From Podarcis filfolensis (lineage: Eukaryota), in the NCBI GenBank assembly GCA_964270895.1, contig OZ185440.1: a stretch of DNA of 64,000 nucleotides; one strand, written 5' to 3'. A program made the position numbers and the translations under genes. This document shows positions 21,601-54,200 of this stretch, piece by piece. Positions within the stretch are counted from its first letter, which is position 1, and every line of letters begins with the position of its first letter. The notes under the pieces were generated by a model, which did no database searches, was not told where the DNA came from, and was given only the letters and a program-made list of their open reading frames with translations.

Positions 21601-24600
21601 ATAATTTATCTTGGTACACAGCACCATATCCGCTCAAGCAGAATCAGTGCAGGCATACTCTTTGGGGAACTTCAAGGAGTCTTCTCAACCAGATAGACTA
21701 GAGGAAAACATGTTCTCCTCTTTTATCTTATGAAGTCCCAACAAAATACGAAACTAAGCAAACTAAGAAATGGTTTGCTCTACTATTATTGGCTACTTTT
21801 ATTTATTTTTTAGCTTTTACAAGTTGTACTTGGGATCAAACTGTGTTTTCTCCCATAGTACCTTTCTAGAATGCTATTTTGCAACATTTGCAGCTTGACC
21901 AAGATTTTAGTGTAAAGGGTTCCTTTTTTATTTTGGTGATGATATTTCTTTGGCAATACACAATCTATGCCAATGGATAACCATGTTGGCCTCAGCCAAT
22001 AGAATTACCTTAAGCCCTAGCCTTCAGCACGGGTCTTGGCTTGCTTAGTTTTTTTTTTTTTTCATTAAATTTATATGATGCTTCATTGCTCAAAACAAAA
22101 CTTCAGTTTACAAAAAGAATAAAACAATGAAGTTATCAGTAAAAAAAAAAAGACAGTTCAAAGCAACTATATAAAATACTCAGATTTTTTTTTAAATAAA
22201 AAAACCCAATAAGCTAAAAACTAGATTAAAACCAATGTCAACATGGATAGGCTTTCCTAAATGAAGGTATTTTCAGCAGGTGCCGAAAACCGTACAGTGA
22301 AGGGGCCTGCCTGATGTCAATAGGCTTTTGTGGAAAACCTCTTGAAAAGTGAAGAGGCCTGGGTAGCAATGCCAATATAAGAAAAAGCCCCCATTTTATT
22401 CTGTTTGCAGGGCACTTGCTGAGTACAGCAGAAGTTGAATCTGCTTTGGTGGAACACCTGGCGGTTTCGGAGGCAGCAGTAGTAAGCCACCCGCACCCAG
22501 TGAAGGGAGAGTGCCTCTACTGTTTTGTGACGCTGAAGGATGGTCATGATTTCACAAAGAACTTAGTTGATGAACTGAAGAAACAAGGTAACCTTGGTAG
22601 ACCATCACATGTCGCTTGGCAAAAGGGCCAGAAAGCCCTTTTGGATTTGTGAGGTGGGTGCGGGAGGGGCAGGGTAGCATGCTGCTCATGCAACAAAGAA
22701 AGCCACCTTAGGCCAGGTTAGACTTTTTGTCCACCTGGTCACATCCCAATGAAGCTGAATGTTGGAAGATTCGGGGGGAAACAAAAGGAAGTACTTCTTC
22801 ACCCTACATGTAGTTAAATTATGGAATTTGCTCCCACTAGAGGCAGTGATGGCTGCCAACTTGAATGGCTTTAATAGTAGATTAGAAAAAAATCATGAAG
22901 GATAAGGCACAGTGGTTATTGCCACTGATGGTTGTGTTCTCCTCCTCCATCACTGTCAGAGGCAGTGCGTTTCTGAATAGCAGTTGTTGGAAACCACAAG
23001 AGGGAAGAGTGCTGTAGTGTTCAGGTCCTGCTTGGATGCTTCCCATGGGCATCTGGTTGGCCACTGTGAGATCAGCATGCAGGGCTAGATGGGCTTTTTC
23101 TTTGTCCTTGGTATTATCTGGTCCAACTGGCAGTCTCTCTGGAATACCCAGCAAAGGACATTCCCTTCACTTCTTACCCAGTTCTTTTAAAACTGGATAT
23201 ACTAGGTATTGAATTCTGGACCTTAGGCATGGTAAACATGTGCTCAGTTGCTGAGCCAGGATCACATTGGTGGAGCGGATGTCACACTAGCCTGTTCAGC
23301 AAAAGGAAAGCTACCTGCTGGCTCAGATTTTCTTTTGGAGATCATTCTTCAGCCCTTCTAATCTTCCTGAAATGAAGCCCCACCCCAGCAACTTGCATCA
23401 TCCCACAGCCTGGCTGGCAGGACAGTTTTCAAATAAAAGGTTCATTGCTTAGTTGTCCCAGAGGCTAAATTTATCTCTGCTGGCCTTATTGCCTCCCACA
23501 TGTTGCTCTCCTTGCCAGCTGGCACCTGACTTGAATACATAAGGGCAGACCGCATGGCCCGTGAACAGGGTGTGGGTTTTGCAGTGGCGAGGCATTTCAC
23601 AACAACCCTTCCTTTCCCTTTGACAGCAGAGTTGCTGTAGAGGAGGGTGGGTTTCCACAACAGGTTCGTTTCCAAATTGGACTCTGGGGTAGCGGTATTT
23701 ATCTGACCAAGGTCTTACGGGAACAGAAATCATTCGACGTGTTTTTAATGAGCGGAGCAAGACTTCCCCAGAGTGGCTGCTTTTTAAAACAGGCCCGTTG
23801 GTGTTAGTTACTCCTGGTCAGCCCCTTTGTCATTCAAACACTGTGTTCTGCAGAATCCTTTCAGAAGCTTTTCACGCACTCATCAAGGAGAAGAGTTTCC
23901 CTGAAAGACTATAATGAGAGAGAAGCTAATCTCACTTTCCACTGTGCAGCTGTGAAGGGACATCTGGGGTGTGCCAAGGATGACACCTGCAGATGGAACA
24001 GGCACATGAGGCTGAGCTAGTGCCTTCTGTGTACTGACTGTGGATCTAAACAATGCCCCATTTCCAGAGGCAAATGCAGAGAAGTCAGCGTGGGAGGGGT
24101 CCCTGTGGTTTGAGAAACACTGCTTCCTGTCAGAAATAAGAGCCGGTAGAATAAAAATGTTGCATACCTTTTAGAAGAACGAATAAGTTCTAATTGGAAA
24201 TGGGAATGATGAAAGAAGAACCTCGGTTACAAAACTGAAGTGGAAACAATCAAGGAAGAATTTATATTACAATTTATAAATCTTATTCCTGAAAAGGGTT
24301 TTGTTTTCTGTCCCTACTATGTGTGTTAAAGTTGCATTTCAGTGTAACTAGGAGCAGGGGGGTGCTGTGGTCTAAACCACTGAGCTTCTTGGGCTTCTAA
24401 TTGGAAGGTCTGGCAGTTCGAATCTATGTGACGGGGTGAACTCCTGTTGCTGTGTCCCAGCTCCTGCCAACCTAGCAGTTCAAAAGCATACCAGTACGAG
24501 TAGATAAATAGGTACCGCTGCGGTGGGAAGGTAAACGGTGTTTCAATGCGCTCTGGCACTCATCACAGTGGCCCGTCACGCCAGAAGCGGTTTAGTCATG

Positions 24601-25997
24601 CTGGCCACACAACCCAGAAAACTGTCTGTGGGCAAACGCCAGCTCCCTCAGCCTGAAGTGAGATGAGTGCCGCACCCCATAGTTGCCTTTGACTGGACTT
24701 AACTGTCCAGGGTCTCCTTTACCTTACTTATAGCAGTGTGTTCCAATTGAGAATGCCAGTCATGCCCCTTTCCCCTGGATATTTCATTTCTCTCCCTTCC
24801 GGGTGGGATGTTGGTGTCTTGTTTAGCTATTCTTCCTGTTTGCATGGGTTCACGTGCTTTATGAATGGTCCAGAGGCTATCATAGCTAAAATCCTTCTTT
24901 CATTTGCAGTTAGAGAAAAGATTGGGCCCATTGCAACACCAGATTATATTCAGAATGCACCTGGCCTGCCCAAAACCCGCTCAGGTAAGATATGGATTTT
25001 ACAGTATATGTGCAGGAAGCACAGATCATGGTGCTGTAAATACCTCTTGCCTTACATTACAGGTTCTTGCTTTTAATTGAATTTACATTCTTTGCTTTCT
25101 TTTTGGAAACACAGTGTGGGAATTGGGAAAACTAGTAAAGCTGCGAGTAGCTATTTAGTAGCCTCTGTTGTCTTGGAGCCTTGTGGAAAACATGGAAATC
25201 ATCTTGCCTCTACTGTAGGGATGGCATGACAGTATGGTTTGATTGGCAGAAAGGATTTCTAATATGTCACAAGGCAGTAGTGGCTTGTGAGGAAACCCAG
25301 CCAGATGGGTGGGGTATTATTATTATTTATTGTACTGCCCATATAGATCAGTGGGAATTGTGTGGACAGCAACTCCCAAGGCAAGGTAGAAGTTGTTTAT
25401 CATCATGGGCTTAATAGACCACAAGCTTAACACAAGTCAAGTGTGATGCAGCAGCAAAATAAGCTAGTGCTCTTCTAGGCTGTACCAACAGAAGTCTAGT
25501 GCCCTCATCAAGGGAAGTAATAGTACCGCTCAGTTGTGGTTGTATGGCCATGTCTTGGATCCTTTAGTTGAGATTCCTGCATTGTAGGGACTTGGATTAG
25601 ATGACTCTTAGGGTTCCTTCCAACTCTACAGTTCAATTATTTTATTGTCTTTGGGCAAGTTGCTTAGAATTTTACTCCCAAGTTATTAATTTTATTCAAT
25701 TCATTGTATTTTATGTTTGTAGACTAATCTGGGGTCAAGAATCCCAGTGTATATCCTATTTTTAACAGCATGTCCTAAAATCCTGCGTCACTGCCTAAAT
25801 ACCATTCATTAATCATCTTTTTCTTGGAATGCAAGTACAGTTTGATGTTACACTGCCATTTCTTTGCAGGTAAAATTATGCGGCGGGTATTAAGAAAAAT
25901 TGCCAAAAATGACCAGGAGCTGGGAGATACCTCTACTGTGGCAGATCCAGCAGTTATAAACCACCTTTTCAGCAACCGGTGTGAGACAATACTGTAG
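592..25997 (+). CDS. ACSS2: Acetyl-CoA synthetase 2 (cytoplasmic), spliced CDS, 5'-incomplete (exons 1-2 outside window)
   Basis: 16 GT-AG exons splice in frame (1732 nt to TAG). They contain [33 protein letters not shown] and [11 protein letters not shown]. Exon sizes match the recalled human ACSS2 structure. Confidence 0.98.
2375..2478 (+). CDS. ACSS2: ACSS2 exon 4 (104 nt) [34 protein letters not shown]
   Basis: tttcacag acceptor, GTG|gtagga donor. Confidence 0.97.
2998..3070 (+). CDS. ACSS2: ACSS2 exon 5 (73 nt) [24 protein letters not shown]
   Basis: tttttag acceptor, CAG|gtaaaa donor. Confidence 0.97.
3399..3484. repeat. Hairpin-type dispersed repeat; relatives at about 16530, 33411, 34634, 49608 and 58660
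   Basis: Inverted termini TGCAATCC...GGATTGCA with internal CCCACTGA/AGAGTGGG stem. Confidence 0.6.
4140..4336 (+). mobile_element. CR1-type LINE 3' UTR fragment
   Basis: CATCTGGTTGGCCACTGTGAGAACAGG...CTAGATGGGCC...GATCCAGCAGGCT, shared with the 22760 and 60268 copies. Confidence 0.7.
4940..5015 (+). CDS. ACSS2: ACSS2 exon 6 (76 nt) [25 protein letters not shown]
   Basis: tttgtag acceptor, CAA|gtaagt donor. Confidence 0.97.
5372..5720 (-). mobile_element. Sauria SINE, full length
   Basis: tRNA-like head GGGACACGGGTGGCACTGTGG on minus, central GAAAGCACGTCAAAGTGCAAGTAGAT, tail GGGGTCCCTTTACCT. Confidence 0.9.
5967..6216 (-). mobile_element. tRNA-derived SINE (Squam3-type) with (TTC)n tail
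   Basis: Near-identical to 57811..58057; A/B-box-like head. Confidence 0.88.
6410..6524 (+). CDS. ACSS2: ACSS2 exon 7 (115 nt) [38 protein letters not shown]
   Basis: ccttgtag acceptor, CAG|gtgagt donor. Confidence 0.96.
7385..7500. mobile_element. Short imperfectly palindromic non-autonomous DNA element; related copies near 4650..4758 and 11565..11680
   Basis: CTCCCATAATCCCTGACCATTGACCATGCTGGCTGGGACTGATGGGAG core recurs in both orientations. Confidence 0.55.
8728..8766 (+). CDS. ACSS2: ACSS2 in-frame cassette exon (39 nt) [13 protein letters not shown]
   Basis: ttttaacag acceptor, AAG|gtattt donor, phase 0/0. The peptide resembles the recalled 13-aa insert (GKLKEKSKRVQPQ) of the long human ACSS2 isoform at the same junction. 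Confidence 0.85.
13199..13336 (+). CDS. ACSS2: ACSS2 exon 8 (138 nt) [46 protein letters not shown]
   Basis: ttcttcag acceptor, AAG|gtatgt donor; AMP-binding loop motif. Confidence 0.98.
13597..13790 (+). mobile_element. Older tRNA-derived SINE; related degraded copies near 23110..23260 (-) and 57290..57432 (+)
   Basis: TGGTAGAG...GAAGGTCCCAGGTTCA head; CTGCCAGTCA...GATGG...GGTCTGACT tail shared among copies. Confidence 0.65.
14514..14529. promoter_or_regulatory. Palindromic CTCF-type motif CTGCCACCTGGTGGCA in ACSS2 intron 8
   Basis: Minus strand reads CCACCAGGTGGCAG, matching the CTCF core. Confidence 0.55.
14560..14801 (+). mobile_element. Non-autonomous Tc1/mariner-superfamily MITE (242 bp), family A
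   Basis: TA flanks, TIR CAGTGGTA(T/C)CTC...GAGGTACCACTG, internal CAGGTTAC/CAGGTTAAG repeats; second copy at 58974. Confidence 0.9.
14919..15089 (+). CDS. ACSS2: ACSS2 exon 9 (171 nt) GVVHTIGGY...[21 protein letters not shown]
   Basis: tgtttcag acceptor, TTA|gtaagt donor. Confidence 0.98.
15494..15627 (+). CDS. ACSS2: ACSS2 exon 10 (134 nt) [12 protein letters not shown]...[20 protein letters not shown]
   Basis: ctgctcag acceptor, GAA|gtaagt donor. Confidence 0.98.
16285..16417 (+). CDS. ACSS2: ACSS2 exon 11 (133 nt) [21 protein letters not shown]...VDTFWQTET
   Basis: atggcag acceptor, ACT|gtgagt donor. Confidence 0.98.
16994..17050 (+). CDS. ACSS2: ACSS2 exon 12 (57 nt) [19 protein letters not shown]
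   Basis: cctgcag acceptor, GCT|gtaagt donor. Confidence 0.97.
17491..17571 (+). CDS. ACSS2: ACSS2 exon 13 (81 nt) [27 protein letters not shown]
   Basis: ttggcag acceptor, CTG|gtaaga donor. Confidence 0.97.
17823..17864. repeat. Compound (AG)n/(CA)n microsatellite
   Basis: Direct reading. Confidence 0.95.
17900..18310 (-). mobile_element. L2-type LINE ORF2 fragment (decayed, downstream of RT core)
   Basis: Translation [15 protein letters not shown]...CSLGLHL...AQV...FFQLRLV resembles L2 WM..N.LKLN..KTE...LGV.LD...QLR. Confidence 0.8.
19774..19882 (+). CDS. ACSS2: ACSS2 exon 14 (109 nt) [36 protein letters not shown]
   Basis: ccttttag acceptor, ATG|gtaagg donor. Confidence 0.98.
20632..20700 (+). 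CDS. ACSS2: ACSS2 exon 15 (69 nt) [22 protein letters not shown]
   Basis: ccctgccag acceptor, CTG|gtaaga donor. Confidence 0.98.
22235..22325 (-). mobile_element. L2-like LINE 3' fragment
   Basis: GCAGGTGCCGAAAACCGTACAGTGAAGGGGCCTGCCTGATGTCAATAGGC preceded by A-rich tail complement; recognised from memory of squamate L2. Confidence 0.5.
22411..22587 (+). CDS. ACSS2: ACSS2 exon 16 (177 nt) [15 protein letters not shown]...DELKKQ
   Basis: tttgcag acceptor, AAG|gtaacc donor. Confidence 0.98.
22760..23098 (+). mobile_element. CR1-type LINE 3' fragment (end of ORF2 plus 3' UTR)
   Basis: AAGTACTTCTTCAC...ATGGAATTTGCTCCCAC...GTGATGGC typical CR1 ORF2 end, followed by the shared 3' UTR motif. Confidence 0.75.
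24351..24725 (+). mobile_element. Sauria SINE, more diverged copy
   Basis: Aligns by eye with the 5372 and 48580 copies. Confidence 0.88.
24910..24984 (+). CDS. ACSS2: ACSS2 exon 17 (75 nt) [24 protein letters not shown]
   Basis: tttgcag acceptor, CAG|gtaaga donor. Confidence 0.98.
25415..25632 (+). mobile_element. CR1 LINE fragments (ORF2 piece joined to 3' end)
   Basis: GTGTGATGCAGCAGC...AAGCTAGTGC...TAGGCTG and GATTAGATGACTCTTAGGGTTCCTTCCAACTCT. Confidence 0.7.
25870..25997 (+). CDS. ACSS2: ACSS2 terminal exon, coding part (128 nt) [41 protein letters not shown]
   Basis: tttgcag acceptor; TAG at 25995-25997; completes PKTRSGK (catalytic/acetylated lysine). Confidence 0.98.
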
Positions 25998-35700: not shown

Positions 35701-38700
35701 AAAGAAGGGAATGAAAACCTACTGCATAGGAAGATAAAATTCTCTTTCCCAGTTTTCCTTCATGTGCCTATTCCTATCATACACTTCCTTCAATATTCTA
35801 TAAGATGGAGACAGAGGGCTTATTTGCATTTTCTTGTTTGTGAAAACAAGAAGTAACAGAGCATATTTCTTGCAGATGAACAACAATCATAGCTTTGTAG
35901 AGCTTGCAGTTCTCTTCCCCTACCTGTCTGAGCCGTAGAGTTCCCAAGCTTTTGCAATGCCCGTGGCAATCCCTTTGGCTGGATTATTGGTCAGTAATTT
36001 TGAGGCTTCCTTAGATTTCCCTAGAACGTTCAACACATGCCTGCAATTGGGATGCATATAGAAAAGTCACACAACAATTCACTGTACACAGCTGCAATTG
36101 AAGAGCCAACCAATTGAGATGTAAAGTACAAATGCCAACCATCCTTTATGAATGGTGCACGTGTGTACAAAGTTACTTTCGCATGCCAAATATATGTAAG
36201 CCCAGTAGTTGACAGTAAAGTCATGGCGAAGTAATCCAGCTAATGCGTCCTTTCAGCGCAAGGATTTCCACTTGCAAAATAAGACTTTCTCCACCTCTCC
36301 TCCCCCTTGTGCCCCTCCCTTCCCCAAATTTGCTGCAGAGGGCTGCGGGAAACCCTGGAACAGATTTGGGGGGGTACATGGGGGGACAGTGTCCCATCGT
36401 GAAAGAGGAAATCAAGTTATGCATGTTTACAGGTACTATAAATTAATTTTGCACTTGACAATAGATTCCTGAAAGCTATATATAACAGACAAAGCTTTTC
36501 CAAAAGGACACAACATGCTACTGTGTCTTCTCTGATTGCACTGCCCAAGTGCAAAAATCAGAATTGGGATCAGAATTCAATATCGTGAGAACCTCAGATT
36601 TCATTTTTCATAATAAATAAGTCACCTGAGGTTGTGATGGCCAGCTGTGACAAGACTCACTGAGAGTCACATCTATAATGCTACTGCTTGTGATTCTCAG
36701 AAAGGAAGGTGGAAATGCTAGATGCTAGATTACCTCCTAGGCTGGTGCAACAAAGAGGCCTAGATAAGATACATTGGCATCACACAAGAGCAGCAGGCTC
36801 AGTTCAAGATCACACACATACAGTGGTGCCTCGCAAGACGAAATTAATTCGTTCCGCAAGTCTTTTCGTCTTGCGAGGTTTTTCGTCTTGCGAAGCACGG
36901 TCAGTCGCAACTGCACCTCTTCAAGCGGTTTTTTTAAAAAAGGAAACAAACTTGCAAGACGTTTTCGTCTTGCAAAGCAAGCCCATAGGGAAAATCGTCT
37001 TGCGAAGCAACTCAAAAAACGAAAAACTCTTTCGTCTTGCGAGTTTTTCGTCTTCCGAGGCATTCGTCTTGCGAGGTACCACTGTATTGTGCTAGCCTAA
37101 CTCGGCCCATTGCAGGGGTTTCTGTTGGCTACTGCCTGTAAGGATACTGCCAATAGTAGCTTTTGCCTCTCATCTGGGCAAAGGCATTGGCCAGTGGAGC
37201 CAGGCAGAACTGGGTGGAGATGCGCATCTGCCTCATCCAAACCCCCTCCAGCACAGCAAATCAAGGTATTGGTTTGCTATGCCAATTTTAAAGTGGCTTC
37301 TGTAACATGGGCAGACATTGCCAGGTAGTCTCAAAAGCTAGATAAGGGAAGAATGAGCAGTAGGTGAGGGGGTAGGCCTTTAGCATCTTGTCCAGCTCTT
37401 TGTACCTCACCAGTACAGCAGAATTAAACACAGCCTTGGCGAAAGGATAAGACATGAAGGACCATCTATAAGCCAGCTAGAAGTTGTTTTGCTGAAAACA
37501 CACACAGAAAGACACACAGTCTGGAAGTCCTTACCGATGCACCGCAGTGGTTCTAGATGTGAGGCCTCCAAAGCTGGCAGCAATAGTGTTTATTTCTATT
37601 TGCTTTAGAGCTGGAGTGCCTTCTGCACCATAGTCAAACATGTAATCAGAGCGATTAATTCCTAAAAACACAGACTGGACAAGGCAAAAAAGTAGCAAGA
37701 AATGGAGCAGCCATCATTCCAAAGAGGATTCTATACATTATCTGTCAAGTGCCAACTGAGCTAAAAACATCTTATGGGGGAGGTGGTGGTGTTTTGTTTT
37801 GTTTTGTTTTTATTATGCATTTCATGTTTTTATCTTTTATTTTTATGCTGTGAACCATCCTGCGATGGATGGTATACAATTTTAATAATAAAATAAATAA
37901 ATAAAATAATAATATTTTGACAGTTAAATAACATCATATTTGATTACTGTGCAACTACCATATTATTTATTTAAACAAAAAATAGACACCATTTGATTGT
38001 AAACAAACAACCCTCAAAGCAGTTTACAAAGAGAATTAATACAATTATTAGTAAAATACAGTTTCAAACAACTGTTAAAAACACTAAAAAACCAAACATA
38101 TGAAATCATATATTATCATGGAATACCTGAGTTATTCCTTCTTTCAAAACTTGCTTGTAGATTTTGAAAAGCTGAGCTGTAAAGTCATCTACTTTGACAG
38201 TACTAAGAGGAGAGAAAACAAATCTTATTTAGTACTCAAGCCTGCTGTGACAAAACAAGGAAATTATCATTACAATCTTTTATGTAAAACCATCTGACGT
38301 TAATACTTCTTTGTCAAGCAATAATGGCAAGATGATTTCATGTTATACCCCAGCTCTGAACATATTACATGAAAGATGCAAGTTCTATGAAATCAGGAGG
38401 ACTTATGTCTACATAAATGTTTAAAGACCTCTTGTGCGTTGAATAGCTGACAATCTAAAAAACGGCTGGTGAGGCTTTACCTAAGGATGAAAATTTTGCC
38501 TCCTGAAAACCTTTCCCAAGGGGGAGGGGGAGGAAACTAGCAGTCTTGGAATCATGTGTCAGATTTCACAAAGCTTGTGTTCACACAGAACAAAAACGTG
38601 CATTGTAAAAGAAAGCTTTAGTTGTTCTCTAACCTTTCCTCTTCAATTAGCCAACTGCCAATCAGGCTAACAGGCAAGGGAGTTAATGATTATGAGACAT

Positions 38701-42049: not shown

Positions 42050-43130
42050 TTCCGCCACTCCTAGTCCCTCAAGTAAGGATTAGCCCCCAAACATTTCCCC
42101 CTCCATAGTTAATTAAACGGGAATAAAACTATTCTGCCTTTAATCCCCACCCCAACAACAACCACAACTTCTCGTCGTTCGGGGAGACAGCGGGTGGGTT
42201 GGCACCACTTCGTCCTCGGCGCTCCCGCTTCCCGGTTCCAACGCGGCAGGACAGAGGCGAGCGAGTACGAGGACCCCCATCGCCCCCTCAAGAAGCTCAC
42301 CCCTCCCGCTCCCTCGCCCCGACCACACCCGCCTCCTCACATTCAAACTGCCTATGCAACCGTTGGAGGTAGCACGATGACGGAGACCCTCCCCCCTCCC
42401 TCTATTTTTAAATCCGGGTACCTGGAGTCAGTCACTCGAGTGAAAGTCCCCAACCAAGAGCGCTCTACTCTTCAGGCGCTAAGAATCAGATGGCCCTCTC
42501 ACAGATTGGCTACCCCGCCAGCCTATCGAGAAGCCGACGCGCCCTTTCCTGCTGATTGGCAGGAGCCTCACCCAATCGCGTTGGAAAACTGCAAGGAGGG
42601 GAGGTTAAGGGGAAAGGGAAGGCGGAGCCAATGCAAATAAAAAAAGGCGGGTTGTGCTATTCTACCCCGCCCCAGGTTGCGCAAGGTTCGTCGGTCAGGA
42701 GTTTCCCGGGCGCCATTTTTGAATGTAGTCGACTCAGTTGGTGTCAGGATGGGGACGGAGTGGCGGTTGTCCCTGGAATATGGGTGTCACGGGGCGGGTG
42801 GAAGAGCGGCGGGCCGTTCCCCCAACACGGAGAGGGCCAGAGCTAAGCCTCTGGCTGTTGCTGGAGCCGCGGTTTGTTGCCTAGAAAGGAAACCGCGATA
42901 AAATATTGGGCCTGGTTATAGGAGAGGGCCGTGAGACACGGGCGCCTCGTCACAGAGGTATGCGGGTGCCAGTCGCCATTGTCTTGAGGGGCGCTGGCGT
43001 CATGCGTGTCTCCCCGAGAGTCAAGGGAAGGCCCGCAGCAGGGGCTGAGGGACGAACTGGTTAGAGCCACCTGCGGGTGAGAGAGACGGGACGGGAAGCC
43101 ACCGCGGGTTGGCTGCGAACCTTTTTCCTC
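42050..43130. promoter_or_regulatory. CpG island / bidirectional promoter shared by GSS and the unrecognised + strand gene
   Basis: High GC and CpG density against an AT-rich background; CCAAT boxes at 42505, 42555, 42572 and 42628; GC box CCCCGCCCC near 42665; TTGCGCAA 42677; CGCCATTTT (YY1-like) 42711; splice donors on both strands at the edges. Confidence 0.88.
42422..42480 (-). other. GSS: Candidate non-coding first exon of GSS (boundaries uncertain)
   Basis: Minus-strand donor CAG|gtaccc at 42421 inside the CpG island; alternative donors GGG|gtgagc at 42300 and AAT|gtgagg at 42340. GSS exon 2 begins with an acceptor, so an upstream exon is required. Confidence 0.4.
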
Positions 43131-44307
43131 TGGGTTTAGGTAGGGTTGCCATACGTCAACAATTTCGCCAAAAAGAAAAGCTCAACAACTTTTGTGTCCG
43201 GATTTTCACTTTTTGAAATATGTCAACTCTAGGTGAACTGGAAATAGCAGGATCAAAAGCCTATCAGGAAGGGTGCGGTCTCAGAAAGTATCTGCCTTCT
43301 ATGAAGGTAGTCCAAGCTCTTGGGGTGAAAGCCTTGTTGCCTCATTTCCTTTCCCACTCTTCTGATAGCCATTGATCTTGACTTCCAAAAGTCTGTCCTG
43401 GCCCATGGATGCTTTGAATTATCTCCCAGTGCACCTGCACAATGCTATCCTATGTCCTTCAAATGAAAATCCCTCCTCCAACCCCGCCTTTGCTTTACTT
43501 GGCACACCGATTCTCATGCCCTAATGTGCAATGAAGCGCATGCAATTTAAACTTCTGCATATTGCTTCTCTTGTTTGTTTAAAACGTTTTTATTTCTTTA
43601 GCCAAAAAAGGCTCTTATAGTGAAGTACAAAAGATTGCTAACACTCCCTGCCCTCGGGTTTACAATCTGCCTCCTTTAGTTGTTGTTTCCCTGTGCTGAA
43701 TGTTCCTCGGGGAGGTAACCTGTCTTCTTGTACTATATTTGCCATGCTATGTAAATTGTGCTGGGAATGATAATGCTGGGAAAGATGATTAGATAGGTTT
43801 GTTCTTAAATATAAACAGCAGATGCAAGGCCCCTTAGAGAAGCAAGGGCCTGTTCTGTTTATCTCAGTGGAGCTGACACACCTGAAAAGTGAGATCAGCA
43901 GCACACTGCATAGTCTGCTTTGACTGGACCTAACCTTTACCTTTTTTTACCTTTACCTGCACCACCTTGTAGGCATGTTTATGTTTGCTGTCACACACTC
44001 TGGAAGTATGCAACCAGGCTCTTTAGCCTTTTGGTTTACAATGCAACATTTTAAATGACATTTTTAAATAAACCTTTTAGGTGGTTGTAGGGTGGTCCAA
44101 AAGGATAAAAGATTTAAAATGATAAAATTATTTTGGACCAATTCAAGGTGGTGTAGATGTTCTGTTAAAATATTGTGTACCATCCTAAGAAGGTCCAATA
44201 AAATCTACATTAATATTTTTTTAAGAGGAGTATATTCTGGTAGGTATATTTCAAATTTTGTTTTGGTTTATAATGACTGGTCATGCTATATTTACATTTT
44301 AGGTGAT

Positions 44308-44401
44308 ATGTCCAACAAGAACTCAGCGGGGTCTGACACAGAAAGTGAACATAATTTTTATTCTGACTGTTGGGAAGAAAGTCTTATACATATCAACAAA
44401 G
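44308..44401 (+). CDS. First coding exon of the unrecognised gene: MSNKNSAGSDTESEHNFYSDCWEESLIHINK
   Basis: tttacattttag acceptor (exon starts 44303), ATG at 44308, AAG|gtaaac donor, phase 1 matching the next exon. Confidence 0.75.
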
Positions 44402-47400
44402 GTAAACTGAAGACCAAACAAAGGAGTACCTTTATTCTAAATTATTAACTCTATTAATAGATAATTTCTATAGTAAATTTATTGCTGGCATTATAATGAT
44501 GGATTCTGTTAACTGCTTTTGAAAACTATAACTTTGGTGTGTTTTTTGTAATGTTCAGAAATAATGTTTTTGAGTTGATAGGTTTTCTTTTCCCCCCCCC
44601 CCCCAGACTCACTTGACTCTGACAGTGAAAGTGATCTCTATCTTCATTCAAATAGTCAGTGCAGTTTGTTGGAAAAAGAAGGAAAAAGCAAATTGAAAAA
44701 AACTTTATTGGTCTCAGAAAAGAGCTTTAGAAAATACTGCAAAAACTGCCCCTTTCTACAACATTTAGAGAACACTACACAGTTTCAAGTGGAATTATCT
44801 CCAGAATCTATATTGCAATTAAACTTTAAGGACTGTCAGACAAATGGTCAGTCGTCAAAAGCTTATTCACCCAAAATATTTCCAGATCTTGACAGGTCTT
44901 ATAGAGACCATTTGTGCTTAAATTGTAGAATCCCTTATGTGACGGTTACTAAGAATTCAGAAAAAGAACAAACCTTTTATACAATTAAGGAAGCTTATGC
45001 ATTTGATAAGCTACATCAGAATCATCCATCAACTGATTATTATCCCACTTCAAAGCAGAACAAAGCTGTGCAAGTTTCCTTTCCCTGCAAAGAAACGGAA
45101 GCTGAGGAAAATGCTGTCTGTGAATTTTTCAAACAATCAGCAATACATTCTGAAGTAGAAGAGACACCAAACAGGAAAGCTATAATATTTCACAGTACTG
45201 AAAGTATTTTCAGTAAAAAGACAAATTCTAATGAACTGGTGAAAGACAATTCTGATTACTCTTCAGAAAAGCCTTATAAAACTCACAGTCCCCAGACACC
45301 TGAGCAAATCTATTTGCACCCCAGTTCTGGAGAACTTGCTATTTCTTTGGTATTAGAAGCAGCATATAGAGATCCATCTGGTTCATCACAAGGAGTTGGT
45401 AATTCTTCAAATGTTAGGGTGGGAAAAGAAGATTCACAGAGGCATGCTTTAGCTTTTAAATTTAAAGGCCCGGAATATAACCAGTTGTTTAAGAAGTTGC
45501 GTATTTCTATTGTTCCAAGTTCTGGACACTCATATACAGAGAAGGAAAAACATAATACACCTTTTATAAAGCTGGTAGGGCTTTCACAAATTTTGGTTGA
45601 TGAGTCCAGACCGTCTCTTGCCTCCTATGCTGAATCATCTGAAGCTAGTCAGCCTCTGGCAACTCATCCAGAGCCATCTGAATCCCAAAGCTTCAACAGT
45701 GATTCTGACCAAGTGCTATCTTCACTGGAACTTTGGTCTTCCAGTGGGTTCTTTCCATCACTGAAACATTCACACACAACTCAGTCTTCTCACTACTTTG
45801 TCCAATCATTGCCATGTTACAAGGTTACCCCTGTTCATAGGACTTCTGAAGTTCAGAAAGTTCAACTGAAGGCCTCCAGGCCTGTGAAATCTGTTGTGTT
45901 TACCAAAAGCACAAAAGTACAGAAGGACAGGAAATTGAGAGCCAAACCTCATACTTCCAAATTTCAGTGGTCCAAGGCTTTGGATACTGAACCTATAAAC
46001 CAAAATCCTCAAGCAGCAGAAATAAACAAACCGTATTTTGTACCCTTAACACAGACTACTAAATGTACCTGCAGCCCATTGCTTGATTTAACTGTTGATT
46101 TGCATTCTGAAGGAAAATATTCTGAAACGCTCCGAAGTGTTCACAGAAAATATTGCAAAAGAACTGGAGGTGGCAAAGTAACTCCTAGATTTTCCTCCTG
46201 TTGCCTGCGAAATCCAAATCCTAGAAGCCATTTTGAGAATCTCCAATATATTTCTCCAGGAAGAAAGAAAAACAATTCAAAGATGCGAAACATACTGAAC
46301 TATTGTTTAGGTTGGACTGGAGGACAGAAGCCATGTGAAAACTGTAAAGGGGGTGTTTCTCCCACTCTGGATAGTTCAAATATAAAGAGGAATGAGATAT
46401 GCACTCCACATCCCCCAACTGATGGAAATTCCATTGCCTCACTTCTTCCAGGTTCAAGGAATAGTCTAGGTCCACTTCCTACTGCACTGTCTCTTTCAAA
46501 TGAGTGGAGGCATTTATCTGCTCCCTGTATGCAAACTGAAAGAGTCACTTGGAGTCCTGCACTATCCTATTCTGATGCTAAATGTAGCAATTCTCATTCT
46601 CCTTGTGCAAATATTAAAGTAGTGCAGCTACCCAGGGAAATGAATATGCTTAAAAATATAGGTATGGAAAAAATGGATTTTGGAGCTGTCCAGATGGCTG
46701 GTGGAGGCTTAGCCCCCAGGAAGCATTCAATCTGCCCATGTGGAACTATGTCTCAATGTGGCTTGTTCCCCAATGGAGATATTTCAGAGTTGGTTAAGGA
46801 AAAAGCTAGAGGAAGCCCCAGTATTAACCCGAGAGCCAATATGACTGAATTCAGCAGGGTGAATTCCCATGCAGGAACCTTCAACACACAGGAAGACTGC
46901 TGTGCTAGTTGTCATTTCTCTCCAATGTGTTATTTTCATGATCCACAAGAAGTGGCAAGAAATCATTTTACTAAAGTACAGTCCTTCTTTGAGAATGGAT
47001 GTCCTAGGAACTTGAGAGAAAATGTTGTAGAGAGAAACAAGGCACAGAAAAGAGGTGAAAGAAAAAATGTCAGCTTCCATATAGGACCGAGTTATTCACA
47101 AGTGACAGGTACACACAATGCATCACTTTCTAATTATGGCTGTCAGGCACCTGTTTATCACTCTGAATGCTCAGGCTGTTCATGCTGCCAGAATACTGTT
47201 AAAGAACATCTTGACTTAAAACATCAAGTGCTAAAGAACTGCTTAAACAGAGAGAGTGTTTTTCTAGTGGACCCTGGAAAAGGGACTAGAAGCCAGTGCA
47301 AATGTTCCCAAGAAATCCCGCTTTTCTGTGTTGACCAAACTGATATGTATAAGGGAAACAGGTGTGATTTCCATGAGAACAGAATCTAACCTTACTCAGG

Positions 47401-49110
47401 TTTGTACTCGTTTATATAATTTTTTATATATGTGTTGCTATCAAGTTGGAAAGATATAGATGTACTGTACTTCTCTGATCTGCAATTATTCCCCCCCCCC
47501 CAATGCCACTGAGAAAGTGGGTGCAAATGATGCTCACAAAATTGCATGTTTATCTGTAGAAGAAAAGTGTTTTGTTTAGCAAACTAAATAGTGAGGAGAA
47601 CATTTCCATCCCAGATTTCTCTCTGACATGCTAGTTTTCTATGGACTGGGATTTTTTTTCTTATGGAAAAACATTAAATCTTGTGAACCCCCACCTGTAG
47701 CCCTAACACAGATGTACCACTTCAGTGAAAATTAGATCAAAGACGTTATGACAGTCTGTAAGGAAGTTCATATGCATTTCTTATTGAACTAATAACTCTG
47801 CAAATTGTGTTTTCTTATTTGAACTTTTCTACCTAACAATGAAGACTAGGACCCGAGTTTAAACTTATCAACTAAGTTCCAGCTCAGATTTTTAATTTTA
47901 GTTATGTGTTTCTCATATTTTACTATTTGTATTTGTTTGGATAGCTTATGACTTGTCTCAGAACTCTCATATTGTGGGGGCAAGGCTTAATAAATTGTTT
48001 AAAAACAGTTGGGCAAATATTCAATGAAAGATAATTCTAGAACCATCAGGCAGCCATTGAGAATGTACACTGTACATGGTATAAACTATTACTGTCCATA
48101 GTACAGATGGCATTCTAAAAAAATATATAGTGCTAATAATGAAATTAAGACTTAACTTATTTTCTGCCAACCTGTCCATTAAAAGTACTAATTGGGATTA
48201 AAGCAAAAGTGTGAGAACAGGGCATGGGGAGACTTAAACCTATTCCAGACTCCTTTCAGTTTGGTGACATGGCCTTGCAATCCAGCAGAATTTACACTTG
48301 CAGCGTGGGTGGTGTTTAAAAAATGCTCATTTTAAAGGCTTGTTTTCCCTCAGGCCGGCTTAGCCAGCGGAAACCCAACTCTTCAATAGAGTTTGGAATA
48401 TGGATAATTTAAAATGGCCTAATTTAAGATGGCATAAATTCTGCTGGCTTCCTACAGATTGCTCTGCCAAAGTTGCATTTAACATACAATTGGGAGTCAA
48501 TATTAAAAGTACACTGTAACTTTAAACATACTTTTTGATATGAGCTGCTAATAAAAGAACCCAATTCATTCCTCTGTGTAAAGGTAAAGGACCCCTGACC
48601 GTTATGACTCTGGGGTTGCGGCGCTCATCTCGCTCTATAGGCCGAGGGAGCTGGCGTTTATCCGCAGACAGCTTCTGGGTCATGTGGCCAGCATGACTAA
48701 GCCGCTTCTGGTGAACCAGAGCAGTGCACGGAAACGCCGTTTACCTTCCCGCTGGAGCGGTACCTATTTATCTACTTGCACTGTGTCTTTTGAACTGCTA
48801 AGTTGGCAGGAGCTGGGACCGAACAACAGGAGCTCACCCCGTCGCGGGGAATCGAACTGCCGACCTGATCAGCAAGCCCTAGCCTCTGTGGTTTAGACCA
48901 CAGCGCCACCCGCGTCCCTAGGCAGTGACAAACAGGACACTTACCTGTCTGAAGGTAGCAGATATTTTTGTTCATCTCTCACTTGTGCTGTTTATTTTTA
49001 TTAGGGATCTTCACATATTAACCAAGGATGGAAAAGGCTCCATGGAATCCACAAACGCTGTAAAAAAAGAAGTTGGTACAGTTGTTTTCAATGACAAGTC
49101 AGTGGTTTAA
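44308..49110 (+). CDS. Unrecognised protein-coding gene; model 44308..44401 + 44607..47361 + 49005..49110 = 984 aa, Ser/Cys-rich, mostly low complexity
   Basis: 907-codon open frame; phase-compatible GT-AG junctions (94+2755+106 = 2955 nt); AATAAA at 49158 after the stop. An unspliced-end variant stops at 47389 (958 aa). Confidence 0.78.
44607..47361 (+). CDS. Giant coding exon (2755 nt) of the unrecognised gene
   Basis: Long polypyrimidine tract plus cag acceptor at 44606; open frame throughout; CAG|gtgtga donor at 47362 (frame otherwise runs to TAA at 47389). Confidence 0.85.
48580..48918 (-). mobile_element. Sauria SINE
   Basis: GGGACGCGGGTGGCGCTGTGG head on minus, CTTTACCTT tail. Confidence 0.9.
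49005..49110 (+). CDS. Probable terminal coding exon: DLHILTKDGKGSMESTNAVKKEVGTVVFNDKSVV*
   Basis: tttatttttattag acceptor, phase 2 matches the 47361 donor, TAA at 49108, AATAAA at 49158. Confidence 0.6.
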
Positions 49111-51030
49111 AAAATGAAATGTTGACTTTTGTTGGTATGTGCTTTGTAGTGAATATCAATAAATGAAGACCCACAAAGGACAGTCACATTGGGTTGTAGC
49201 CAAATAGTGACACATGCAGCTCACGTTGATACTGCATCGCAGTTTCCCCACCAAGCAAAGAAGGATAAACTTTGATATACGTGGAGAATAAGAGTGCTTC
49301 TAAATTGTTGCTGTTTTGGATTGTGGTTCAGTCCCATAATGGGAAATTCAGGTTACACAACTGAAATTTATTTGGCATTCTAGCATAGCAACCTTGCTTT
49401 CTCCCAGAATTGGACTTTTTGCCATAATGAAAGTGACTGAAAAATGCACTGGAAAGTGTGGATAATGCTTGAAACAACACGGTCTGTTATCTCCACACAG
49501 ATCAGAATGAATGCTCAATAAATAATGTCTAACATCCCTGCAAACTTTGTGCAAACAAATGAGGATAAAACCTCAATGAGCAAGTTGCCTGGAAAGAACT
49601 TTAAATTTCAATCCTATGCCCGCTTATGGAGGAGAAAGCCCTATTGAAATCAGTAGGACTTGTTTCAACAAAGATATGTGTAACACTGCACTGTTAGCAC
49701 CATAATAATGCATATTGTTTATGGTAAATTGCAGAAGTATATATGATATTAGTCTAATACAGCAAAAGCAATGAAGTGTTGTATGATATCTTGAAGACTA
49801 GCAGATTTATGGCATACACATTAGGCAGGGATAGCCCCCCTGACCGTGGCTGGAACTGATGAGAGCTTGGAGTGCAACATTATATTTGGCTGCTCCTAGA
49901 TTAGAGCCTACAAGATCATATTTTCTTTAGTTCTGTCCCAGATAGTTCTGTGGACTTAACTCTCCTTGAAAGCATGTTCTCCCTAAACAGGAGTATTGGA
50001 TGAAAAGCTTGCTTTTTACCTCTGACCTGCCAGTGAAATGCTGTCAAGCAGCAGTTTGGCAGTCAGTGTTTCCTTCTGTTTTCTCCTGCCAGTCTGCATG
50101 TAAGATTCATGTGACTATTTTCACTAGTTATGAATGCCCAGTTCATGAATCCTGAGTCTCATGATCAATTTTTGTATCATCAAGTAGATGTGCAAGTAGA
50201 TTTTTCTGCATTACCTTGTAGCATCCACATGATGGCAGTATATGAAGGCAAGACCCCTATCTTTTCAGGATTATTCTTCAGTATTTACAATATTATTTGA
50301 AACTTTCTCTTTTTCTTGTTTCAATCGCTAAACTTTATAATCTGCACACTGTTCCTGTAAGATAGCTTTACTCAATTAGCTTTGCAGGAGACCTGAGCTT
50401 AATAGCAGAGATTTTGTGGCATTACCAGTCTATGCAGATCAATGTAGCTAGTAAATTCACTTGGTCATGAATGATATAAACTGCAGCTGATGTGCATGCT
50501 TATGCATTAGCTTTTCCGGGTCTAGGATTCAGTATGGTTGAAATTCAATTTTTGTAACTAGCTGTGACTAATCAATTGATTCACATCACTTCACTATGAT
50601 CCTATTTAGGTTTACAGTGTGATAAAAGTGGATGTTATGGACTGATGGTTTCAGCTGTTCCATTGAATTTATACTCTTTTGCTGAGTTTCTGTTTAAATC
50701 ACTAGTTACTTAAAGGAATGAGGAGCTATGGATGGAGAGATCAGTCTAGCTCTTATCTATGTCGTTTTCACAGGTGATCATTCATTATTTGTCCGCGTTC
50801 ATCTGTATTTTTTTAAAAATGCGATGAAAATTTGTATTTAAATATCTATTTTCTCATATTACACATTTCTAAATGTATTTTATCTTAAAATAGGCATTTT
50901 CGTACAAATTTTGGTGTGCCGTTTGAGTTGAGATCTGTATTTCTACATTCAGAGAAGTGTGAAATGTCATAGTGAATGTGCATTCCACATGCTCATAGTG
51001 TATGTCATTTAGTTTGGATAAATATTATTA

Positions 51031-51293
51031 CAGTGGTACCTCGCAAGACGAAATTAATTCGTTCCGCGAGTTTTTTCGTCTTGCGAGGTTTTTCGTCTTG
51101 CGAAGCACGGTCAGTCGCAACTGCACCTCTTCAAGCGGTTTTAAGAAAAAGGAAACAAACTCGCAAGACGTTTTCGTCTTGCGAAGCAAGCCCATAGGGA
51201 AATTCGTCTTGCGAAGCAACTCAAAAAACGAAAAACTCTTTCGTCTTGCGAGTTTTTCGTCTTCCGAGGCATTCGTCTTGCGAGGTACCACTG
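51031..51293 (+). mobile_element. Tc1/mariner-superfamily MITE (263 bp), family B
   Basis: TA flanks, same TIR and internal repeats. Confidence 0.9.
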
Positions 51294-54200
51294 TATAATT
51301 TACAGCACTCTTCTGTTGACATCATTATTAACATGGTCTCTTTGTTATGGTAGACTGGCCACATTGCCCCCCCAAAAAAAAAACTTGATGAAGGGTCACT
51401 CTGTTGTTTTGCTTCAGCTACTCTAGAACAGTTCGTGATCTTATACATAACAGATTATCACTAAACAACCCATACACCATCCCAATCATTTGAAATCATC
51501 TGCTTAACCTCTGACTGCTAAAGTTTCACTCACACACTTTGAAGTTAGTTTTCTTAGTCATAAAGGTAGAAACTTGCGAAGGAGGAGAGGGAGGAGGAGG
51601 AGGAAAGATTCTCAGGGTGCCATATTCACATCATGTCCTTGCTGGATTCTACACTTGGATAGAATCATAGAATTAAAATAGCACTATACTTAGATTTAGG
51701 ATTACAAATTATTATCAGAACTGGATGGGGTCAAAAAGCCATCTAATTACAACCACACAAAGCCCATTAAGGCAGGACCATTCATCCTCCAGATCTCTGC
51801 CACCGACTACTTTGTTTACACTATCCAGACCAGACATGGTAAAAGAGAACAGGCACTCCAGAAAAAAACACTTGCAGAGCACTCTACAGGATGAAGGTGA
51901 AAAGTAAATTAGATCCCTTCCCAGATTTCTTTAGATTTTTAAGTATTCAGGGAACTTCATAAAAATTATTTGTCACATAATATGAACCACCTAAGTTTCT
52001 AAAAGTTTAAACACACTTTGTAATACTAAAATTCTCTTATTTTTTATGCCACAATCAAAATATTTACCCTGGGCAGCTATTTCAGTGAACTTTACTGTGT
52101 GCTTAGGACAGCAGCATTAATCATCCTGTTGATAATTCAAGATAGCAGAGGGACACACTAAATCTGCTCTTCTGGACAAGGGGAGAGGTGGTTTGGATAC
52201 TGGAGGGACAGAAGTGATACCTTTGTCATACAAAGACTACAAGCAGGTAAAGTTTGAATTTACAGTGCCAGGCCTCCCTTTGTAGGGATGGAGGAACAAT
52301 TTGAATGGTCAGCTGCCCGAGACTTATGGAATCTGATGGATTTCTGAATGTGCTGGGGGATTTTTCAGTAGCCAAAGCTGATAAACCTGTGGAAGCCTTT
52401 ACCTCGTTTTAGTATAATGCAGCGAGGAGACCTATTGACAAAATCGCTCCAGATTACACAGGTTTTGAAGATGGATCTGTTTACACAGGCATTCTCATCT
52501 TTTAGTTTCTCTTTTAGTTGCTGTGCTGTTCTAATGAGATGGTTTTCCGGATATTTTAATCATGGATATTTATCTTTTAATGTTTTAGTGGGATTTTAGA
52601 GGGGGTTTAGTGAGATTATTTTATATATCATAGTATAATTATTGTGTATTTTTATTCTTGTATTTTTTAAGAATGTTGTGCAATTGGTGTTTGTTTTATA
52701 AACTGCTTAGAATCTGTCTGGTCATAGAGTGGTATATAAATTAATGAAAAAGAAGAAGAAGAACGTACTATCGGCTGTACACAACCATAGAGTTTATCCT
52801 TAGATGCCCATCCTGCTGCTTGTTGGATTGCTCAGCCTGGAGAACTTTTAATATTGTTACCCAGAAAACAGCAATCATGCTTCTGTCATGCTGACAGCTA
52901 AAGTATATACTGCTGCCACTTTAAAAGAGTACAGATCTGTAGATGACTGCATTCTTTCTCAGGTCTTTAGCTATATTTTAGCCTTTAATAGTCCTGGTAA
53001 GAGGCAGGATGAAAGGTCAATAAGTGATAAGCAGTTGAGTGGGTTGTCGCTTCTCTGAGTGTTTTCTATTGACTCTGTGCTCTAAAATGGAATTGTAGGC
53101 ATGGTTTTGTCTCCAGTTGGTATGGAGACTGGGTTGATGTTATAATATCCCTATTTGCTTATGAAGGAAGCCTTCAATAATTGAGCTAACTACTTTTCTT
53201 AATGTGGCTGAAGTTGATAACAAAAGTCAGCAGCAGATACAGCAGTGGATGTTACCATGCTGGAAGGGAACAGAATAGAGTCTGTACAAAAGATCAGAAC
53301 AAAAGTCTGCCTCTGGTGAATTGGTCTTGGGCAAAACTGAACTTGTGTGGTTAGGTTGAAATGCAGAGCAAAACATATCTATAGTTGATTTCTCCCCTAT
53401 TCCTTTTCCAGTCATGGTCAGGGCTTGTTAATAACACAGTTACTGGTATTTGACAATTGCTAAAACTGTCCTCTTAATTGTAGTAGGATTGCCTACTGTG
53501 GTATAGTAATCACTTAAGATACCTTGCATGTAATTTTGTAGCCCAGAGAAGAGACAGTAAATTGGCAACAAAATGAAATATAATTGCTCTCATTTCATTC
53601 ATGTCAGTGAGTGAGACTGGAATATAAATTTGTGCTGGAGCACTGATCCTCCACAGTATTATCAGCATTTGAAGTATATCTTCTGAAACTACATGCCACA
53701 AATCACTTCGGTAGTGCCACCCATGGAAATGCCTGTTCCTTTTATGAAATGGATCTAGACAGCTATTTTTTTACACCTAGGTAGGAGTTCATTCAAAAGA
53801 TACATTTTTGTAATTTTTATTTGACATTATACTGAAAAAGATACCCTGATCAGAAAATAGTTGCTTATATATTTTATTAACACTGGAAAGGAATTCATGT
53901 CAGAAGATTGTGGTGTTTTTGCATCTTTTAATTATGTGTGTGTGTGTGTGTGTATAAATAAAATCTCAGATATAAAGCATTTACCTTGTTATAATCTGTT
54001 TGCTAAGATATCTAATCTTTATGATAACAAAATTGAAATGTAAATTAAGTAGATAGTGTCCAATGATAATACTTTTATTAATCAAGATTATTATCTGCTA
54101 TGTTTGTTTATTGTGTGTTAAGTTTTATGTATATTTATGTTTTATAATAGTAATAAGCTGTCCTGGATAAGTTCTGTTGGAAGAGGGAAAAGATAACTGA

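Follow-up and report, generated by a model that had tools for sequence, protein, structure and literature searches.

A long open reading frame beside GSS

The locus considered here lies next to the glutathione synthetase gene (GSS) of the lizard Podarcis filfolensis, and the question it raises is whether a very long reading frame transcribed away from GSS belongs to a real gene and, if so, how old that gene is and what it might do. The window, i.e. the whole 64-kb stretch of DNA that was analysed, contains a 907-aa ORF at 44666–47389 (+) inside a 935-codon stop-free stretch (44582–47386). The runner-up stop-free stretch in the window has 196 codons. Regional GC content is 0.30–0.42, and with a per-codon stop probability of 0.064 derived from local composition the chance occurrence of 935 stop-free codons has a probability of ~1e-27. 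An earlier note on this DNA, made from its letters alone, had judged the 907-codon frame to exceed chance in AT-rich DNA, and these figures agree. The head-to-head arrangement with GSS and the ACSS2-GSS synteny that it described are also present, with ACSS2 exons (+) and GSS exons (−) upstream in the window; MYH7B is not visible within the 64 kb. No second copy of the gene was found in the window by tblastn, and the searches described below returned one locus per named species, indicating a single-copy gene. The ORF occupies the middle, giant exon of a genuine single-copy protein-coding gene positioned head-to-head with GSS. It is very probable that this is a real, vertically inherited gene of non-avian reptiles that has no detectable relatives elsewhere and evolves fast under purifying selection.

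Exon structure and shared promoter

The following features were assigned in the window.

42300–42800 (no strand): CpG-island promoter core shared with GSS, GC 0.57–0.60
44303–44401 (+): first coding exon, acceptor AG 44301–44302, donor GT 44402; ATG at 44308, 31 codons plus 1 nt; matched by tblastn with orthologues from 44308 on
44607–47399 (+): giant exon, ~2.8 kb; acceptor 44606/44607 after a C-rich tract
47362–47363 (+): site of a frame-shifting 2-bp deletion common to three lacertids, from a six-species DNA alignment
47387–47389 (+): lacertid TAA stop, 10 nt 5' of the last exon junction; protein of 958 aa here
47399/47400 (+): ancestral giant-exon donor CAG/GTTTGT, phase 0
48581–48918 (+): SINE-like interspersed-repeat insertion in the last intron, missing from the orthologous intron of Lacerta agilis
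49005–49094 (+): terminal exon, ancestral coding part, 29 codons plus TGA, frame 3
49158–49163 (+): AATAAA polyadenylation signal, read directly from the sequence

The gene consists of three coding exons. Its first intron is in phase 1 and follows ~31 codons, and its second is in phase 0 and follows the giant exon (...Q/GTTTG). Splice sites were compared at seven loci plus the window, and neither the position nor the phase of the introns varies from turtle to gecko. The first exon, which encodes an acidic, Ser-rich N-terminus, is found together with its splice sites (an acceptor, 5 nt, then the ATG) and the giant-exon acceptor in Pelodiscus, Trachemys, Phrynosoma and Heteronotia. The upstream ATG exon and phase-1 join (44401>44607) first proposed from the Podarcis sequence are borne out both by these shared sites and by tblastn with orthologues. 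The AATAAA reported near the 3' end is likewise in place, and is conserved in the three lacertids (Podarcis, Lacerta and Zootoca).

An acceptor conserved 5 nt before the ATG suggests that transcription starts further upstream with a non-coding exon, for which the CpG-island core is the putative origin. Lacertids, gecko and snake share CCAAT boxes, the ATGCAAAT octamer and the GCGCCATnTTTGAA element in this region. BLAST anchoring of the promoter succeeded within squamates only, and a CCAAT-cluster heuristic applied to distant loci was uninformative.

The SINE-like insertion plays no part in the function of the gene. Two further copies of this repeat, 78–83% identical, occur in the window, and the intronic insertion has no match in Rfam, tRNA-like families included.

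Orthologues and taxonomic range

Orthologues were identified in geckos, skinks, cordylids, lacertids, iguanians, Varanus, snakes, two turtles and alligators. The 16 squamate proteins matched show 40–93% identity (E=0 to 1e-161) with 96–100% coverage (71% in one case). phmmer, run exhaustively against 1.84 billion representatives, gave 12 matches in all, including Pelodiscus (E=3.7e-73) and alligator (E=8.8e-26), and unnamed matches in Logan are all skink, gecko or alligator-like. The gene had been called unrecognised, which needs correcting: RefSeq already holds orthologues, every one labelled 'uncharacterized protein LOC...'. These include LOC117048865 of Lacerta agilis and LOC118088472 of Zootoca vivipara (93% and 90% identity), as well as LOC102459295 of Pelodiscus sinensis, LOC117886225 of Trachemys scripta and LOC106737931 and LOC112548554 of Alligator (30–36% identity for both turtles and alligators). 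This is not a new kind of system, and the RefSeq orthologues are unnamed and unstudied. Literature searches using the synteny and six LOC identifiers found no published mention of them.

The lacertid, turtle and alligator RefSeq orthologues have the same head-to-head position relative to GSS and the same exon structure. In 9/9 fetched loci the divergent neighbour on the opposite strand is annotated GSH_synth_ATP/GSH_synthase (Pfam), and the gene tree matches the species tree. The giant exon is intact in 10 species, comprising squamates, turtles and alligator, with 885–971 codons. Several RefSeq models are much shorter: those of alligator have 366–382 aa, compared with an intact 885-codon frame in the DNA, and those of Varanus have 223 and 256 aa, compared with 951 intact codons. 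The models of both look truncated and are open to correction.

No homologue from birds, mammals, amphibians or fish was found in the protein-database searches, including phmmer against the 1.84 billion representatives. A search with the conserved C-terminal half of the turtle protein matched only reptiles, and a profile search of a 5.8-billion-protein database recovered three family members among 8000 candidates scored. These protein searches returned only non-avian reptiles, and the family appears restricted to squamates, turtles and crocodilians as far as can be detected. Because it is present in lepidosaurs, turtles and crocodilians, the gene is old and would date to the sauropsid ancestor; established sauropsid phylogeny gives an estimate of ~280 million years for the syntenic position. 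Birds nest among the carriers, which makes this gene a candidate avian gene loss. Among taxonomically restricted vertebrate genes this one is a well-supported example: old and constrained, and without a domain, fold or literature.

Selection

Pairwise dN/dS (NG86) is 0.43–0.59, with bootstrap confidence intervals of 0.30–0.72, 0.37–0.56 and 0.42–0.61. Maximum likelihood (GY94) gives an omega of 0.62, and the likelihood ratio test against omega=1 is highly significant (2dlnL=96.7, p=8e-23). Coding indels in lacertids (3, 3 / 81, 3, 3, 3 nt) are all multiples of three, and Zootoca has an in-frame deletion of 120 nt; intron indels are of mixed lengths. Selection on the gene is purifying but weak. 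A frame disrupted in relatives or a dN/dS near 1 would have spoken against the gene, and neither was observed (range 0.43–0.62). Intact frames, dN/dS below 1 and homologues in reptiles only all support the initial suggestion of a fast-evolving gene that is lineage-restricted or was lost in mammals. That suggestion also drew an analogy to fast-evolving germline genes, with which the rate alone (omega 0.43–0.62) is compatible.

Lacertid frameshift and the 3' end

The 3' end of the gene differs between lacertids and other reptiles. In a six-species DNA alignment, the three lacertids share a deletion of 2 bp at ~47362 relative to Phrynosoma, Pantherophis and Pelodiscus. The body of the giant exon is in frame 2 and the conserved peptide preceding the donor is in frame 3. 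As a result of the deletion, lacertid translation stops at 47387–47389, so that the protein has 958 aa instead of 984 and lacks the final ~40 residues of the ancestral one; non-lacertid orthologues retain this C-terminal tail. The Lacerta and Zootoca proteins end in the same way, at the read-through stop. The C-termini of Phrynosoma and python match 49008–49091 in frame 3 by tblastn, and the terminal exon also aligns with Phrynosoma and Pantherophis. The second lacertid intron is now located 3' of the stop codon, and the terminal exon downstream of the new stop is presumably 3' UTR. A missing mini-exon of ~37 nt was considered as a way of reconciling the frames and was rejected, as the 'missing' peptide was located in the giant exon itself, immediately 3' of the deletion. 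In alligators, too, the tail is absent, due to an early stop. The lacertid frameshift and the alligator stop reveal a dispensable part of the protein, and it follows that parts of it are under little constraint.

The initial model had a different 3' junction (47361>49005, phase 2) leading to a 35-aa tail and 984 aa, and here homology favors the other frame and the phase-0 donor at 47399/47400. It is improbable that the junction 47361/47362>49005 is really used in P. filfolensis to produce a protein with a new, lacertid-specific tail. The sequence AG/GTGTGA does occur in both the window and Zootoca, in all three lacertids the tail frame runs uninterrupted to a stop (a TAA>TGA change preserves the stop in Zootoca), and the terminal-exon differences between the window and Lacerta leave the amino acids of this frame unchanged, albeit with n=2 only. 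However, Lacerta agilis has AGATGT at this site and so lacks the GT donor, the changes in Zootoca are non-synonymous in the tail frame, and other squamates conserve a different frame. The RefSeq-derived Lacerta and Zootoca proteins, moreover, both finish at the read-through stop. That the shared deletion is instead the first lesion of a decaying pseudogene, or that the lacertid locus yields a mere non-coding transcript, is very hard to credit. The deletion does cut off a conserved tail and omega is fairly high, but ~926 codons 5' of it stay open in three lacertids, where all indels, including the one of 120 nt, are in frame. Furthermore, omega among lacertids only is 0.43–0.46 (95% bootstrap interval 0.30–0.72), identity is higher in coding sequence (96.7%) than in the intron (93.9%), and alligators keep 885 codons despite having no tail. 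A protein-coding lacertid gene ending at the read-through stop remains the preferred reading.

Relationship to known families

No Pfam domain was found in the ORF from the window up to E=1, and searches of 11 family members up to E=10 yielded no DUF and no supported family. A match to Crust_neurohorm, a neurohormone family, in one member only (E=5e-4) was judged spurious. A PDB profile search gave no match either, in keeping with the initial statement that the protein resembles no named family or transposon ORF. The nearest protein-language-model neighbours in the Atlas are exophilin-5, CEFIP/C10orf71, REDIC1/C12orf40 and AMER3. These are alike in kind only, being Ser/Lys-rich proteins of ~1000 aa encoded mostly by one large exon, with no predicted fold and with conservation in short motifs. 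Their scores of 0.64–0.80 lie within the range of shuffled proteins and carry no sequence homology; the corresponding families (PF15089, PF15232 and PF09422) have no Pfam match here and are missing from the phmmer matches. The top named neighbour, REDIC1/C12orf40, scores 0.67, and PF15089 does not match any of the 11 members. Atlas look-ups, all at or below 0.80, return generic disordered proteins at noise level and were set aside as evidence.

Two other origins can be weighed against these results. The gene could be a fast-diverged orthologue of a named gene of birds, mammals or amphibians, located here or elsewhere in those genomes. With omega at ~0.5–0.6 and lizard proteins only 30–36% identical to those of turtle or alligator, a mammalian or otherwise distant orthologue could escape phmmer, the profile search scored 8000 candidates of its 5.8-billion-protein database, and the Atlas neighbours are other disordered vertebrate proteins with giant exons. 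Nevertheless, phmmer found reptiles only while still reaching alligator at E=9e-26, the turtle-based query with the conserved half had nothing beyond reptiles, a DUF matched in 0/11 members, and the Atlas scores are those of noise, so that this origin is regarded as doubtful. A transposon-derived or domesticated mobile-element ORF might be suspected because a single long exon sits in AT-rich DNA that contains repeats, with interspersed repeats close by. It is an extremely remote explanation, as there is no transposase, reverse transcriptase, integrase or other Pfam domain, spliceosomal introns are conserved within the coding sequence, and the gene is single-copy per genome, with no further tblastn copy in the window, at a syntenic position fixed for ~280 million years by the phylogenetic estimate. 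Vertical inheritance of a reptile-restricted gene is the reading retained below.

Protein properties and possible function

The protein has a pI of 8.7 and a GRAVY of −0.73, with an acidic, Ser-rich N-terminal half and a basic C-terminal half. The acidic Ser clusters noted previously are present, and no signal peptide and no membrane or hydrophobic segment was found. AlphaFold2, run with 23 sequences, gives a mean pLDDT of 31 and one short helix, and almost the entire protein is predicted to be disordered. Candidate PP1-type RVxF-like and clathrin-box-like strings are present and were rejected, being unconserved in turtles and alligator or non-canonical; the PP1-type and basic motif candidates are not kept outside squamates. 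Conserved sequence occurs in short motifs only, among them four near-invariant cysteine pairs (C486/488, C709/711, C857/860 and C897/899) that are 96–100% conserved in the 23 sequences and present in the window. These comprise three CxC and one CxxC spaced 150–220 residues apart, and AlphaFold2 did not bring them together. Tesmin/TSO1-type and other CXC or zinc-binding domains have no Pfam match, and the cysteine pairs here are dispersed rather than clustered.

The function of this fast-evolving and apparently unstructured protein is a proposal only. It may be an intracellular, probably nuclear, phospho-regulated scaffold that would act through some eight short conserved motifs lying in the C-terminal two thirds. 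Among these motifs are the three CxC pairs and the CxxC pair, which might serve zinc chelation or redox sensing upon partner binding, and the gene would be transcribed from the CpG-island promoter held in common with GSS. Taken jointly, these proposals are tentative and unlikely to hold in every part. A broader account is less likely still: the gene would be an ancient sauropsid, possibly amniote, orphan that birds lost and that mammals either lost or never had, its pairing with the GSS promoter would have been kept for ~280 million years because of co-regulation, and the disordered protein would, through its four cysteine pairs, be a scaffold that responds to metals or redox state and is tied to glutathione metabolism. 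The fixed divergent pairing with GSS does provide a concrete hypothesis, namely that the two genes may be co-regulated and linked through redox or metal chemistry at the cysteine pairs.

A long open frame beside GSS

The gene adjacent to GSS consists of a small ATG exon, a giant exon and a terminal exon, and the following features were read on the plus strand of the window.

44303-44401, +, first coding exon, conserved architecture
44607-47399, +, giant exon, conserved architecture
44582-47386, +, stop-free stretch of 935 codons
44666-47389, +, ORF in the ORF listing of the window, 907 aa, within that stretch
49005 onward, +, terminal exon, conserved architecture
49158-49163, +, AATAAA

The region is AT-rich (GC 0.30-0.42). 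At its base frequencies (A 0.33, T 0.28) random sequence would run into a stop about once in 16 codons, and 935 codons without one have a probability of ~1e-27. The runner-up in any frame of the whole 64-kb window reaches 196 codons. Chance falls far short of explaining a frame of this length, and the one to which the earlier note drew attention is thus real.

Taxonomic range

Sixteen proteins matched in a word-indexed search of 5.8 billion, all of them from squamates and all named 'uncharacterized' or 'hypothetical'. The Lacerta agilis protein is 93% identical and that of Zootoca 90%; those of Phrynosoma, Hemicordylus, python, colubrids, elapids, Crotalus, the gecko Heteronotia and the skink Lerista are at 40-49%. 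This order marks the window as lacertid DNA. Exhaustive phmmer over 1.84 billion cluster representatives gave 12 matches in total, adding Pelodiscus sinensis LOC102459295 (E=3.7e-73), Alligator sinensis and A. mississippiensis (E=8.8e-26) and Varanus komodoensis, and a profile search recovered Trachemys LOC117886225. The Logan proteins among the matches resemble those of skinks, geckos, iguanians/lacertids or alligators. With the conserved half of the turtle protein as query, nothing matched outside reptiles, and bird, mammal, amphibian and fish proteins gave zero matches across all protein-database searches. Its presence in Lepidosauria, Testudines and Crocodylia places the gene in the sauropsid ancestor; absence from birds, if true, is a secondary loss.

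Pfam searches with the ORF and with 11 family members, the latter scanned up to E=10, yielded nothing credible, and a profile search of PDB sequences gave no match. Atlas look-ups reached at most 0.80, with generic disordered proteins, a score that the tool's own calibration counts as noise. None of the defining features of named families (TE domains, CXC domains, REDIC1 and others) was found, in keeping with the earlier view that this is neither a transposase nor an RT. Its nearest known counterparts are its orthologues, which RefSeq carries as 'uncharacterized LOC' models, and no paper on the gene turned up in the literature searched. Thus a gene first described as unrecognised had already been modelled by annotators, although the family is undescribed.

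Gene structure and orthology

Nine loci were fetched (Pelodiscus, Lacerta, Zootoca, Phrynosoma, Pantherophis, Alligator, Trachemys, Heteronotia and Varanus). All nine have a giant exon that runs for 885-971 codons without a stop. In Alligator mississippiensis it spans 885 codons (locus L006, 8444-11098) versus a RefSeq-derived protein of 366 aa, and in Varanus komodoensis 951 codons (locus L009, 10858-13710) versus proteins of 223 and 256 aa. Both RefSeq models are thus under-annotations, and look like truncated or mis-split fragments.

The splice architecture is unchanged from turtle to gecko. An acceptor AG lies five nucleotides before the ATG, implying an upstream non-coding exon; a phase-1 donor follows after ~31 codons, the giant-exon acceptor sits behind a pyrimidine tract, and a phase-0 donor (CAG/GTTTG) ends the giant exon, followed by a small terminal exon. 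This shared layout bears out the phase-1 join 44401>44607 proposed from the window sequence. The codon-model tree matches the species tree, with turtles and alligator together, gecko basal among squamates, iguanian with snake, and the lacertids together. The gene has been inherited vertically, as a single copy.

A lacertid frameshift at the 3' end

The earlier note joined 47361 to 49005 in phase 2, giving 984 aa, and its GT donor is present in the window and in Zootoca; Lacerta has AGATGT there. Homology contradicts this join, since the giant exon of other squamates and turtles runs ~12 codons further, to ...Q/GTTTG, and the terminal exon (49005-49094) matches theirs in frame 3 and not in the frame that the join requires. 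The window retains the 12-codon peptide and its donor (47399/47400), displaced by one frame. A six-species DNA alignment places a 2-bp deletion at 47362/47363, common to the window, Lacerta and Zootoca, after which the frame reads eight new residues and then TAA at 47387-47389. Just this ending is seen in the Lacerta and Zootoca proteins derived from RefSeq. The most economical model of the product in this lizard is a protein of 958 aa rather than 984. Substitutions in the terminal exon among lacertids are too few to show which frame, if any, is constrained.

In the 958-aa model, 10 nt separate the TAA from the last exon junction. Under the established 50-55-nt rule, a stop in this position would escape nonsense-mediated decay. 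In alligators the frame ends independently and earlier, directly after the last CxC motif, and the C-terminal tail is therefore dispensable.

Selection and indels

Pairwise dN/dS (NG86) is 0.43-0.46 among the three lacertids (95% bootstrap 0.30-0.72 for window-Lacerta), 0.46 for Pelodiscus-Trachemys (0.37-0.56), 0.50 for Phrynosoma-Pantherophis (0.42-0.61) and up to 0.59 in deeper pairs. A GY94+F3x4 fit to 677 ungapped codons from nine taxa gives an omega of 0.62, and fixing omega at 1 is strongly rejected (2dlnL=96.7, p about 8e-23). Coding indels among lacertids are all multiples of three (3, 3; 81, 3, 3, 3 nt, the 81 being a trimming-affected estimate of a 120-nt deletion in Zootoca), and those of the adjacent intron measure 1, 2, 5, 15 nt and so on. 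Identity is 96.7% in coding sequence versus 93.9% in the intron. The 120-nt deletion (Zootoca locus L003, about 6297-6310; window about 44620-44740) is clean and in frame, and takes out 40 codons, the second acidic Ser cluster among them, so this N-terminal motif is dispensable in at least one lacertid.

Constraint on the protein is weak yet unambiguous, and its evolution is quick. The dN/dS values below 1, the frames intact in relatives and the reptile-only matches uphold the suggestion of a real, lineage-restricted, fast-evolving gene, which we class as old, taxonomically restricted and encoding a disordered protein.

Properties of the protein

The 958-aa protein has a pI of 8.7, a GRAVY of -0.73 and a composition rich in S (12.6%), K (8.0%) and C (4.2%). 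It contains no hydrophobic segment (maximum 19-residue Kyte-Doolittle value 0.94). Residues 1 to ~400 are acidic, and the remainder is basic with several short basic clusters. AlphaFold2 on a 23-sequence alignment gives a mean pLDDT of 31 and a pTM of 0.23, the sole predicted helix being short (residues 557-566 of the giant-exon product), which we take to mean that the protein is intrinsically disordered. Conservation is focused in ~8 short blocks (279-298, 423-435, 483-503, 543-569, 705-727, 794-798, 881-884 and 892-906, counted from nt 44609), and four Cys pairs are 96-100% conserved (C486/C488, C709/C711, C857/C860 and C897/C899). These data show that the protein is constrained, disordered and not secreted, and that what is conserved in it is a set of linear motifs and Cys pairs.

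One tentative and rather doubtful proposal is that the protein would serve as a scaffold or adaptor that folds upon binding. It might be nuclear, because of its basic clusters, and might be phosphorylated at the N-terminal S-x-x-E/D clusters, while the widely spaced CxC/CxxC pairs may make metal or redox-sensitive contacts.

Genomic neighbourhood

Translated exon-sized stretches upstream of the gene place ACSS2 on the plus strand at ~13-23 kb, including the AMP-binding signature region, and GSS on the minus strand, reaching a CpG island at 42.0-43.0 kb. GSS and the gene thus lie head-to-head, as originally proposed. No myosin-like translation occurs in 49-64 kb, which places MYH7B outside the window. 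An opposite-strand neighbour with both glutathione-synthetase Pfam domains is present in 9/9 fetched loci; the two genes have stayed paired from the sauropsid ancestor onward.

Separating them on the GSS side is a CpG-island promoter core (42300-42800) with three or four CCAAT boxes, one of which is fused to a perfect ATGCAAAT octamer, and a GCGCCATnTTTGAA element, all conserved in lacertids, gecko and snake. These elements are compatible with co-regulation of GSS and its neighbour, without demonstrating it. A conserved plus-side copy of TTTGAA in the same interval overlaps a GCCATnTT string, a YY1-like core, so a reading of TTTGAA as a CHR element is uncertain. In Lacerta agilis the interval from the promoter region to the ATG exon holds ~3.9 kb (locus L002, 5921-9806) that is missing at 44121-44135 of the window, through insertion in Lacerta or deletion in the window species.

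The last intron contains a SINE-like interspersed repeat of 338 bp, of which two older copies (both 78-83% identical) lie in the ACSS2 region.

48581-48918, SINE-like repeat, last intron, shortly before the terminal exon
5411-5720, +, older copy, ACSS2 region
24357-24683, -, older copy, ACSS2 region, near where GSS begins

Comparison with Rfam found no tRNA-like part in the repeat. It is not present in the orthologous Lacerta agilis intron, and is thus a recent insertion. Near-identical long multi-frame open translations also occur at 36694-37097, inside GSS, and at 50976-51423, downstream of the gene; a second interspersed repeat, present in two copies, probably accounts for both.
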